64,000 nt of DNA from the sequence record NC_042060.1. One strand, 5' to 3'. The notes beneath the pieces are model-generated. The model did not search any database. It saw only the letters and a program-made list of their open reading frames with translations, and was not told the origin of the DNA. This document shows positions 46,505 through 57,190 of the stretch, in pieces (within the stretch, counting starts at the first letter, position 1; each line of letters opens with the position of its first letter). Both the position numbers and the translations under genes were made by a program.

Positions 46505-46801
46505 TTAATTTACATCTTTCATTACAAAGCAACTACCATCATTAAAGACAATCTTAATTAGATTGTCAGTTAATGGTCGTTTATATACAACACATTTTAC
46601 ATCGGGGAGTTTAACTACTTCTTTTAAAGCATCTGGCATACCAATTAGATTAATGGTAGCTGCTACTTTATTTAGTGTGTCAAGATGTGAAATCAGCTCA
46701 TGTGCTGACTTAACCAAATCTACCATTGTTTTGTCTTTATCTACCATGCTAGTTACTCGATTTGATATATGAGGTACATACATCGCCAAAGTCTTCACCA
46801 C
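46505..46801 (-). CDS. Hypothetical protein
   Basis: 98 aa; likely start MYVPH. Confidence 0.7.
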   Translation of the reverse strand: MVKTLAMYVPHISNRVTSMVDKDKTMVDLVKSAHELISHLDTLNKVAATINLIGMPDALKEVVKLPDVKCVVYKRPLTDNLIKIVFNDGSCFVMKDVN

Positions 46802-47243
46802 TAGTATCAGCTACAATTGCAACTGGCGACCATCGAGCGGCAACAGCCTCACATACACCGATCGAATTCACTCGACGAATCGCATGAGCACCAGTATCAA
46901 TTACACTGAAACTGAGTTCACTAATGATTTCCACTCCTTTTAGTTCAGCGCTACTATCAATAACCTGGGTACTAATTAGATAGTTAGCTGTATCATTATT
47001 ATACGCAAGTACTAGTCTAAAAACCATGAGGGAGTTATCATTATCGGTGATGCCAGCGACTAGCTCATGATTCGAAGTGAGTGTATAGATACAACTACTT
47101 TCTTGAGTGGTAATTGGTAATCCTGGTGAAGAACTATATACACTAGGTGCATTAGCTGTATGTAGTTCAAACTTATTTACAGCGGAGTTAGGACCAGGAA
47201 CTTTATAACCAATAGGTCGGGCAGTGAAGATTACAACGTTCAT
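46749..47243 (-). CDS. Hypothetical early protein
   Basis: 164 aa, GAGGA RBS after promoter 47289. Confidence 0.85.
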   Translation of the reverse strand: MNVVIFTARPIGYKVPGPNSAVNKFELHTANAPSVYSSSPGLPITTQESSCIYTLTSNHELVAGITDNDNSLMVFRLVLAYNNDTANYLISTQVIDSSAELKGVEIISELSFSVIDTGAHAIRRVNSIGVCEAVAARWSPVAIVADTSGEDFGDVCTSYIKSSN

Positions 47244-47288: not shown

Positions 47289-47296
47289 GTAATATA
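47289..47296 (-). promoter_or_regulatory. Early promoter TATATTAC
   Basis: Exact motif preceded by TTTGAGATT. Confidence 0.85.
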
Positions 47297-47350: not shown

Positions 47351-48070
47351 TTAATTACCACTATAAGTACCTTCAGTACCCTGTTCTTTACGTCGTACGA
47401 AGCGTTGATGAATTGCACTAAGAGCACGGTCCATTGAATTAATCACTACCTGATTCTCTTCGCATGCAAATGGGCCTGCTTGGTAACCTTCAAATAAATC
47501 TTTAACGATTTTAATTAGACAGTCAGCAGTTAGGCCATTTACACCAACTTCTGGAATAACTCCATTCTGCATTAGAATAACACATTCAGTCAAGTTGTCG
47601 CCAGGCATGGCAGCTGGGTTAGTCTGAGCATTATAACCAGTTACTACATAACGTTTAGTTGCACCTGATTTCTGGTCAATACCACTTGCTTCAATATTTA
47701 GACCATTCTCATCAAAATGTTCATGGCCATAAATACCTTGCATGGTTACCCATCCACCATCTTCTTGATAAATCCAGTCTACCCCATTTACATGATAAGT
47801 ATCACCTGGTTTAGGGTCAGCTGGAAGATCTTTAGTAGTGGTTAATGCACGGATACGTGCATATTCTTCAATTGCAATTTGTATATCAGTTGCAGTTATA
47901 TTCTTCTCAGATTCAGTAGCTTCATCTTGTTGAGACTTATCGCTACCTTCCTTTTGATCATTATCCATATCGGAAGAATCTACTGTACTTTTAGCTTCTT
48001 TACTTTCTAAGGAAGCTAACCACTCAAGATTAGGTTTAGACATACTTACCTCAATAAATGAAACCACCAA
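47351..48070 (-). CDS. tad1: Tad1-like immune-signal sponge with N-terminal extension (likely start 48043)
   Basis: QNG..PE.GVNG...LIKIV...GYQAGPFACEEN...A...R..R..G.EGT matches the recalled Tad1 signature. Confidence 0.8.
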   Translation of the reverse strand: MVVSFIEVSMSKPNLEWLASLESKEAKSTVDSSDMDNDQKEGSDKSQQDEATESEKNITATDIQIAIEEYARIRALTTTKDLPADPKPGDTYHVNGVDWIYQEDGGWVTMQGIYGHEHFDENGLNIEASGIDQKSGATKRYVVTGYNAQTNPAAMPGDNLTECVILMQNGVIPEVGVNGLTADCLIKIVKDLFEGYQAGPFACEENQVVINSMDRALSAIHQRFVRRKEQGTEGTYSGN

Positions 48071-48356
48071 TGTAAAGTGACACTACTACATCGGCAACCC
48101 GAGGGTCTTGTGAATATTTAGATTTGACTAGTTTAATAAGTTCGGCTCGATTTTTAATGAAGCCTAGTTTCTTATTATCAATTTCTTCAGCTTTAATTAG
48201 GAAGTCATCTAACTTCTTCTTACTACCCAGTAAATTAATCACCATTTGATCAATAACTGCATTAGAATTTGATAGTTTAGTTAATTCTTGTTCAAAAACT
48301 TCCTTACGTCCTTCTGATCCAATTAAAGCTAGACCGATCTTTTTAAGTAGAGACAT
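48051..48356 (-). CDS. Hypothetical protein (gp183-like)
   Basis: 101 aa in the tail operon. Confidence 0.8.
   Translation of the reverse strand: MSLLKKIGLALIGSEGRKEVFEQELTKLSNSNAVIDQMVINLLGSKKKLDDFLIKAEEIDNKKLGFIKNRAELIKLVKSKYSQDPRVADVVVSLYIGGFIY

Positions 48357-48414: not shown

Positions 48415-57190
<8,776 letters not shown>

Follow-up and report, generated by a model that had tools for sequence, protein, structure and literature searches.

In phage phiKZ, gp184 is a minor capsid protein that belongs to the seven-member inner vertex-binding complex and undergoes processing by the head protease gp175 (PMC11297242). The same protein was scored as an inner-body interactor and, with a C-terminal FLAG tag, was detected by western blot after injection into translation-blocked cells; the work also confirmed S/A/G-x-E as the gp175 protease motif (PMC10449902). 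A preprint on phiKZ transposon-insertion sequencing (TnSeq) names it 'Thoeris anti-defense protein 1 (Tad1, gp184)', describes it as injected, and states that gp93 and gp184/Tad1 have their N-termini wedged into the capsid and their C-termini freed by the head protease and injected (10.1101/2025.11.23.690004). Tad1 is the only known anti-defence gene of phiKZ according to AntiDefenseFinder (PMC11724313), and a 2026 review reports that phiKZ injects Tad1, which blocks Thoeris and CBASS (the cyclic-oligonucleotide-based system of antiphage signalling) by sequestering cyclic nucleotides (PMC13282480). Here, we analysed a 64,000-nucleotide stretch of sequence record NC_042060.1 (the window, at its full length) that carries a related gene on its minus strand. 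We consider it very probable that the product of this gene, from Pseudomonas phage PA7, is the orthologue of phiKZ gp184/Tad1, a three-part packaged sponge made together with the structural genes.

Anti-defence proteins are also carried in the head and injected along with the DNA in T4 (internal protein IPI*) and P1 (DarA/DarB). At the N-terminus of the T4 internal proteins is a short capsid-targeting sequence, which is cut off after Glu by the prohead protease. IPI* and DarA/DarB inhibit restriction enzymes by protein contact, whereas the cargo of gp184 is a small-molecule sponge, and we know of no sequence relationship between gp184 and either IPI* or DarA/DarB. Closer in logic are gp93 and gp162 of phiKZ, in which an N-terminal segment is woven into the capsid wall and the head protease cuts the chain after Glu, which frees the C-terminal part for ejection; gp162 is cut at E17|R18 and E137|D138 (PMC11297242). 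The cargo of gp93 and gp162 is a helical inner-body domain and not a signal sponge, and their anchors are extended fibre-like segments, whereas gp184 has a beta-hairpin module. Canonical Tad1 proteins (CbTad1, 7uav/7uaw/8smd/8kbe; CmTad1, 8kbb; SBSphiJ7 Tad1) are phage-encoded as here, are detectably homologous in sequence, and share the fold and a core pocket of an aromatic residue, an Asn and two Arg. They are stand-alone proteins of 120-142 amino acids (aa), whereas in PA7 the Tad1 domain forms the C-terminal half of a virion protein, and replacements affect the residues that contact the ribose linkage and those of the trinucleotide site and hexamer interface.

The gene belongs to a phiKZ-like jumbo phage of the genus Phikzvirus, whose PA7 record (JX233784) is 100% identical to the window (window position = record position - 62000). 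Its product is 96% identical over 230/230 residues to PHIKZ184 and to chain I, 'gp184', of PDB entry 8y6v, the near-atomic phiKZ capsid structure (PMC11297242). A phmmer search against all PDB sequences aligned residues 1-230 with 1-230 of that chain (E-value 4e-151) with nine substitutions. The anchor module holds two of these and the Tad1 domain three, and all mapped pocket residues are unchanged. The three-part layout and the neighbours are the same in both phages, and the order of a gp181-like 2241-aa tail lysin, gp182-like, gp183, gp184, gp185-gp187 and thymidylate kinase is common to the window and phiKZ 181-188. A tblastn search recovered this protein, at 96-100% identity, from 47 phiKZ-like phages, among them the reference genome with its PHIKZ184. 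All public records name it 'hypothetical protein' or 'PHIKZ184', and the phiKZ RefSeq note reads 'structural protein'. The first-pass annotation of this DNA, made from the letters alone, had proposed a Tad1-like sponge that is made late, packaged and injected, and had added that homologues might already be reported. Both statements agree with the literature, in which this biology is published for the 96%-identical phiKZ gp184, already named Tad1 (PMC11297242, PMC10449902, 10.1101/2025.11.23.690004, PMC13282480, PMC11724313).

The C-terminal half of the protein is confirmed as a Tad1 domain by sequence and by fold. After gp184 itself, the next PDB matches in phmmer were the Tad1 crystal structures 8kbb, 8kbh, 8kbg, 7uav and 8kbe (E 8.6e-7 to 1.7e-5, residues 117-226). 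A word-indexed search gave 25 relatives of 190-230 aa, and searching 1.84 billion representatives with the profile of these relatives returned 4444 clusters at E<=1e-3. Alignment A2 comprised 138 sequences, namely 26 close relatives and 112 other family representatives, and its profile matched the Tad1 structures at E 1.5e-30 to 1.1e-25. The protein also matched phrog_2428 (E 1.9e-18) and phrog_23843. Precomputed matches to PF24729 (Acb2_Tad1_hairpin) were present in 21/25 close relatives and marked weak on others. AlphaFold (AF2) run on the 138-sequence alignment gave a model with a mean predicted local distance difference test (pLDDT) of 79, which replaced a single-sequence run (pLDDT 44). 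In this model residues 112-230 form a confident domain with pLDDT above 90, with strands within 110-158 followed by helices 173-189 and 195-220. The top 20 Foldseek matches in the PDB were all Tad1 (probability 1.00; template modelling score 0.67-0.75, normalised to target), and matches in BFVD were named Acb2/Tad1 hairpin domain proteins. The first-pass annotation had recognised Tad1 in the C-terminal ~125 aa and had proposed a comparison by hidden Markov model (HMM) and AlphaFold as a check; phmmer, the profile (E about 1e-30) and AF2/Foldseek supported the assignment over ~120 aa.

Ahead of the Tad1 domain lies an extension of 108 residues. It starts with a conserved motif, continues with an acidic linker predicted to be disordered and ends with a small beta module. 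An N-terminal addition of ~100 aa with an acidic stretch had been noted in the first-pass annotation, and we count 11 D/E against 5 K/R in residues 14-49. Residues 1-16 would act as a propeptide or targeting segment; they hold two [S/A/G]-x-E motifs, and the one at 11-13 is kept in 23/26 relatives, including those with a different middle part, and also in the anchor-only proteins of phages Psa21 and RVTF4. The AF2 model shows residues 1-60 as disordered and a beta module at residues 65-104 (pLDDT 73-91; strands 82-85, 88-92 and 98-100). The protein contains seven matches to [S/A/G]-x-E, and those at 57-59 and 106-108 bracket the beta module. Both bracketing motifs are kept in 6/6 module-bearing relatives, among which three stand at 41-46% identity and two at 82-97%. 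Judging from these motifs, the head protease may cleave after E59 and E108; the supplements of the interactome paper did not contain the gp184 termini. In BFVD, the beta module also showed weak structural similarity, over 35-150 aligned columns, to other virion proteins as well as tail-fibre and minor tail proteins, among them F8SJX4 (phiPA3, 321 aa) and A0A5C1K6R6 (PS119XW, 881 aa); these may be the 'virion-type module' sensed in the first-pass annotation.

The phiKZ capsid structure bears on the role of this module. Beta strands make up most of the modelled part of gp184, which is inserted below each vertex between gp86 and the hexamer 1 centre; it falls short of the proteolytic product, and one of its ends is near a mapped protease site (PMC11297242). 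Match 21 in our Foldseek search was 8y6v chain I, in which only 34 residues are modelled; they superposed on the PA7 model at a root-mean-square deviation of 1.4 A with 94% identity. The two mismatches within the 34 residues fit the substitutions at positions 74 and 77, which would place the resolved piece within residues 55-107. No other stretch with the right number of substitutions is both N-terminal and flanked by protease-type motifs. Stretches within the Tad1 domain and the acidic linker also hold two substitutions, but a placement there was rejected for three reasons: the N-termini are wedged in the capsid (10.1101/2025.11.23.690004), the resolved piece must have one end near a protease site, and the region of the model on which it superposes is structured. 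Thus, the 34 residues resolved in the phiKZ capsid are most likely part of the beta module, which appears to be a capsid-wall anchor. By this reading, the extension anchors the protein to the capsid wall and not to the tail.

We then compared relatives of the protein across jumbo phages. In Psa21 and RVTF4 the syntenic gene encodes only 91-92 residues, corresponding to the N-terminal motif, the linker and the beta module (L002:3857-4132, Psa21 gp249; L004:3857-4135, RVTF4), and no Tad1 domain lies downstream. The gene occupies the same place there: the lysin, the gp182 homologue and a small gene come first, and thymidylate kinase follows. The C-terminal half of the Psa21 protein (91 aa), named virion structural protein in UniProt/BFVD, is 43% identical to PA7 residues 64-107 (E 1e-13), and the last residue of the Psa21 and RVTF4 proteins aligns with H107, precisely at the G-H-E motif. 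The opposite arrangement was found in 201phi2-1 gp280 and phiPA3 gp217 (phrog_23843), which are syntenic and share the N-terminal motif and a 54-58% identical Tad1 domain, but do not have the beta anchor module and its two bracketing motifs. The GenBank note of 201phi2-1 gp280 states that it was found in virions by mass spectrometry. Since the anchor occurs without a Tad1 domain in Psa21/RVTF4 and the Tad1 domain without the anchor in 201phi2-1/phiPA3, the two are separable modules, and the joint between anchor and cargo coincides with a protease-type motif.

Other architectures were also observed around the Tad1 domain. In the phiPA3-like phages phiPA3, HPP-Temi, phiLBG22 and HHBS36_1, two separate places matched the protein in tblastn, which suggests a second Tad1-domain gene in these four genomes. 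Six of the ten longest Tad1-domain proteins (P0104, P0089, P0081, P0095, P0090 and P0048; one at L007:8001-9455 on a 252-kb metagenomic contig) matched Pfam PF25620, the phiKZ major capsid protein gp120, and phrog_3231 in their N-terminal part. The PF25620 matches cover profile positions 142-280 of 635 at 37-87 bits against a cutoff of 27, a region that spans roughly the I-domain linker and the I domain's first half in that capsid protein. Such proteins look like capsid-protein fragments fused to Tad1 in other jumbo phages. Among the best 150 of the 4444 clusters, more than 60 residues preceded the Tad1 domain in 59 and more than 100 in 42, long C-terminal extensions were present in 13 and two domains in 2, although wrong gene starts in metagenomes may have inflated these counts. 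Extended architectures thus seem to be common near the gp184 clade. In several Bastille-like Bacillus phages, Tad1 homologues that stand alone carry the annotation 'putative structural protein', based on their similarity to a protein labelled structural in another phage (for example Bc431v3 orf166, 126 aa, L010:1366-1746). It is conceivable, though we would not yet favour it, that the Tad1 domain of nucleus-forming jumbo phages is an exchangeable cargo on different virion-targeting modules and that the jumbo-phage clade of the domain has shifted its ligand range, having lost the trinucleotide and hexamer site and altered the ribose-linkage pocket; the same anchor is present cargo-free in Psa21/RVTF4. 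The module kinds in such a scheme may be the protease-bracketed beta anchor of phiKZ, the short N-terminal motif alone in 201phi2-1 and phiPA3, and the capsid I-domain-like fragment of the metagenomic proteins.

To describe the ligand pocket, we combined HMMER alignments with residue roles taken from the preprints of Leavitt et al. (10.1101/2022.05.03.490397) and Li et al. (PMC10680739); the resulting map is a sequence alignment in loop regions and not a superposed complex. The core pocket residues F82, F87, N92, R109, R113, G55 and G120 of CbTad1, which provide adenine stacking and phosphate contacts (10.1101/2022.05.03.490397, PMC10680739), correspond to Y187, F192, N197, R214, R218, G161 and G225. 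All seven positions are invariant or nearly so: N197, R214 and G161 were invariant in 138/138 aligned sequences, and R218 was kept in 134/138. A different result was obtained for the contacts to the free hydroxyls of the ribose-ribose linkage, where K130, L183 and Y227 stand in for CbTad1 H29, R78 and N122, and the alignment offers no counterpart of R57. At the position of H29 in this C. botulinum prophage Tad1, 26/26 close relatives have K and 82/112 other representatives have H; at that of R78, the residue is hydrophobic in 26/26 close relatives and R in 102/112 others; and at that of N122, 23/26 close relatives have Y. The alignment of H29 with K130 bears out the earlier remark that the GGAYH histidine is replaced.

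The residues for cyclic trinucleotides and for hexamer formation were also replaced. CbTad1 R90 and T97 align with E195 and N202, and CmTad1 R88, T95, K96, Q98, E99, M102, W103 and K106 align with E195, N202, S203, D205, R206, S209, A210 and Q213, so that S209 and A210 stand where the hexamer interface has its hydrophobic M-W patch. Binding of the cyclic trinucleotide cA3 requires the hexamer, and the spectra of bound cyclic dinucleotides differ between Tad1 homologues (Li et al. preprint, PMC10680739). It is therefore a reasonable prediction that the protein is a dimer without a trinucleotide site. With the adenine and phosphate contacts kept and the ribose-linkage and trinucleotide/hexamer residues replaced, the ligand range probably differs from that of the crystallised Tad1 proteins.

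These findings point to the following course of events in PA7. The N-terminal motif, the acidic linker and the beta module would bring the protein into the prohead, where the motifs and the phiKZ papers place the beta module on the inner face of each capsid vertex, at about 60 copies per capsid. The head protease would then cut after S/A/G-x-E on both sides of the module, leaving a fragment of ~49 residues in the wall and freeing the 122-residue Tad1 domain inside the head. Ejection of this domain into the next host with the DNA, shown for phiKZ, is transferred to PA7. Once inside the cell, the domain may act in the first minutes of infection, ahead of any phage gene expression, and may sequester gcADPR (glyco-cyclic ADP-ribose) of Thoeris and cyclic dinucleotides of CBASS, so that the host effectors stay off, as expected from the family and as cited for phiKZ.

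Several points weigh against this interpretation. Presence in the virion, cleavage and injection would hold for PA7 by analogy with phiKZ. Of the 1,500 arrayed phiKZ mutants in the TnSeq preprint, the nlp1 mutant alone gained sensitivity to cAAA-type CBASS, and loss of tad1 had no fitness cost at 37 C (10.1101/2025.11.23.690004). Four of the 11 gcADPR contacts (H29, R78, N122 and R57) and both cyclic-trinucleotide contacts are changed. A local Pfam-A scan gave no family for the protein or for alignment A1, and local scans with NCBIfam and PADLOC gave none for the protein; PHROGs and PDB sequences alone were informative. The number of molecules may also be limiting: with one gp184 chain per asymmetric unit, about 60 copies are expected per capsid (PMC11297242), and by our own arithmetic ~60 wall-bound copies amount to ~0.1 micromolar sites in a cell of 1 fL, near the dissociation constants of 49-284 nM reported for another Tad1 (Li et al. 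preprint). Because this site concentration is close to the dissociation constant, extra inner-body copies or later synthesis may matter.

The replaced contacts, together with the position of gp184 in the vertex-binding complex, the missing fitness cost of tad1 insertions and the nlp1 result, would also fit a protein that is merely structural capsid cement and whose Tad1-like domain is a relic no longer binding signals. We regard this as very improbable. The resolved capsid-bound piece is only 34 residues long and was placed outside the Tad1 domain, and Psa21/RVTF4 keep the anchor without the domain, which is therefore not needed for a capsid role. All 26 relatives, some of them only about 40% identical, have N197, R214, R218, F192 and G161 unchanged, and these residues are invariant or nearly so in the 112 other representatives; such conservation of the pocket is not expected of a relic. 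Moreover, the C-terminally tagged phiKZ protein exits the capsid and enters the cell. An active sponge might instead work mainly as a newly made late cytoplasmic protein, to which packaging and injection add little, and this would agree with the location of the gene in a structural, late-type block without the early-promoter string and with a capsid model that implies just ~60 wall-bound copies. Signals of Thoeris and CBASS, however, need early interception, and a product made only late would presumably come after the effectors have fired. Injection was shown for phiKZ, the protease motifs bracket the anchor, and Tad1 starts exactly at the junction, as fits release inside the head; gp184 is also an inner-body interactor, so that more copies may be packaged than are bound to the wall. 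Hence, we judge late synthesis to be an unlikely main mode of action, although not as improbable as a relic.

A third possibility refines the packaged-sponge interpretation and does not replace it. The sponge may be active with a shifted ligand range, as a dimer that takes no cyclic trinucleotides and binds a ligand other than 1''-2'/1''-3' gcADPR, for example a cyclic dinucleotide or another ADPR-derived signal. The clade signature described above (K130, the hydrophobic R78 position and Y227), the replacement of the trinucleotide-phosphate contacts by E195 and N202 and of the M-W patch by S209 and A210, the hexamer requirement of cA3 and the variable cyclic-dinucleotide spectra of homologues all speak for it, and the finding that only the nlp1 mutant became sensitive to cAAA-type CBASS is consistent with a missing trinucleotide site, but is not proof of it. 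On the other hand, the loop residues were mapped by alignment, and Arg occurs at the trinucleotide position in only 9/112 other representatives, which means that the sample may be skewed or the site built differently. The 2026 review also has phiKZ Tad1 countering both CBASS and Thoeris. For this activity the review cites Li et al. (Nature 2024); phiKZ is not mentioned in two versions of the Li et al. preprint. We therefore hold this specific form of the sponge as a serious possibility, at somewhat less than even chances.

We also examined the gene boundaries and the local context (Table 1). The first-pass annotation had given the gene as 47351-48070, but a start at 48070 was not borne out. 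This is the extent of the longest open reading frame (ORF) on the minus strand, and the TTG at 48070 is merely the first in-frame start past the previous stop; it was ruled out since it lies inside the gp183 gene and has no ribosome-binding site. The likely start is the ATG at 48043, 27 nt further in, in agreement with the GenBank coding sequence (CDS). A CDS beginning there yields a product of 230 aa and makes the gene translationally adjacent to the gp183-like gene. No paralogues of the three protein parts were found elsewhere in the window.

Table 1. Features of the gp184/Tad1 locus of PA7, in window positions (pLDDT, predicted local distance difference test)
Feature	Position	Strand	Basis
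gp184/Tad1 orthologue gene of PA7 (230 aa + stop)	47351..48043	-	ORF; = GenBank CDS AFO70991.1 of JX233784
Residues 1-16, conserved N-terminal motif with two [S/A/G]-x-E motifs (11-13, 14-16)	47996..48043	-	
Residues 17-59, acidic, predicted disordered linker ending in A-I-E (57-59)	47867..47995	-	Composition; pLDDT about 46-53
Residues 60-108, small beta-hairpin module, putative capsid-wall anchor, ending in G-H-E (106-108)	47720..47866	-	AF2
Residues 109-230, Tad1 domain (beta sheet and two long helices), predicted nucleotide-signal binding cargo	47354..47719	-	phmmer, profile, AF2, Foldseek
Shine-Dalgarno GAGGT, 4 nt ahead of the ATG, overlapping the stop codon (TGA) of the upstream gene	48048..48052	-	Sequence, ORF ends
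gp183-like gene (101 aa, predicted protein), adjoining upstream	48051..48356	-	ORF, phrog_27341, synteny with PHIKZ183
gp182-like baseplate spacer protein (664 aa)	48415..50409	-	ORF, phrog_3181, phiKZ gp182 role (PMC13250141)
Terminator-like G+C hairpin and short U-rich tract, 7 nt past the stop codon	47327..47344	-	Consensus scan
Second terminator-like hairpin, 12 pairs, T-rich tail, between the gp181-like and gp182-like genes	50430-50457	-	Scan

The hairpin behind the gene folds as RNA at -16.7 kcal/mol (z -3.45). The gene had been described as the last one before the terminator of the tail cluster; a terminator does follow directly and the tail/baseplate block ends here, but the product is a head protein. 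Given the second hairpin, genes 182-184 may be a transcription unit of their own or depend on read-through, and the gp182-like gene, whose phiKZ counterpart serves as a baseplate spacer (PMC13250141), probably is the first gene of this unit. The first-pass annotation had also quoted an 8-base early-promoter string and stated that the gene has no copy of it upstream. Searched exactly as quoted, the string was not found between 48044 and 50465, the gp182-gp184 block, in line with that statement; the string was taken as the annotation gives it and is only a putative early-promoter consensus. One review gives no letters for early promoters, only an AT-rich motif about 10 nt long near -10, and its late-promoter element has only four bases, too short for any prediction (PMC7598289). 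One copy of the 8-base string lies at 47289-47296 on the minus strand, just past the hairpin and 45 nt ahead of the next gene (46749-47243). In the whole window the string occurred 12 times against 7.0 expected, a count reached in 5/100 shuffles, and 10/12 copies lie on the minus strand, which holds most genes of the window. A sigma-70 promoter scan gave 12 sites against 16.8 in shuffles, that is, fewer, and is irrelevant here because the phage uses its own RNA polymerases.

The biology of a packaged and injected sponge is already known for phiKZ gp184/Tad1, and the PA7 copy adds only an orthologue. We did not find reports of the residue replacements of the clade, the bracketing protease-type motifs or the anchor-only gene of Psa21/RVTF4. 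The residue signature, the bracketing motifs and the relatives with an anchor alone or an alternative anchor are thus modest new descriptive points. On this basis, the annotation of records that read 'hypothetical protein' or 'PHIKZ184' can be updated, and the residue map predicts a ligand range unlike that of the crystallised Tad1 proteins. A sponge delivered with the DNA is present ahead of any phage gene expression, and an injected sponge thereby answers how a phage can block signalling defences despite their firing within minutes. Relatives with only the anchor, or with a different one, outline a modular way of packaging that could guide searches for other injected anti-defence proteins, and, if this holds true, capsid-targeting tags could reveal other pre-packaged anti-defence cargos.

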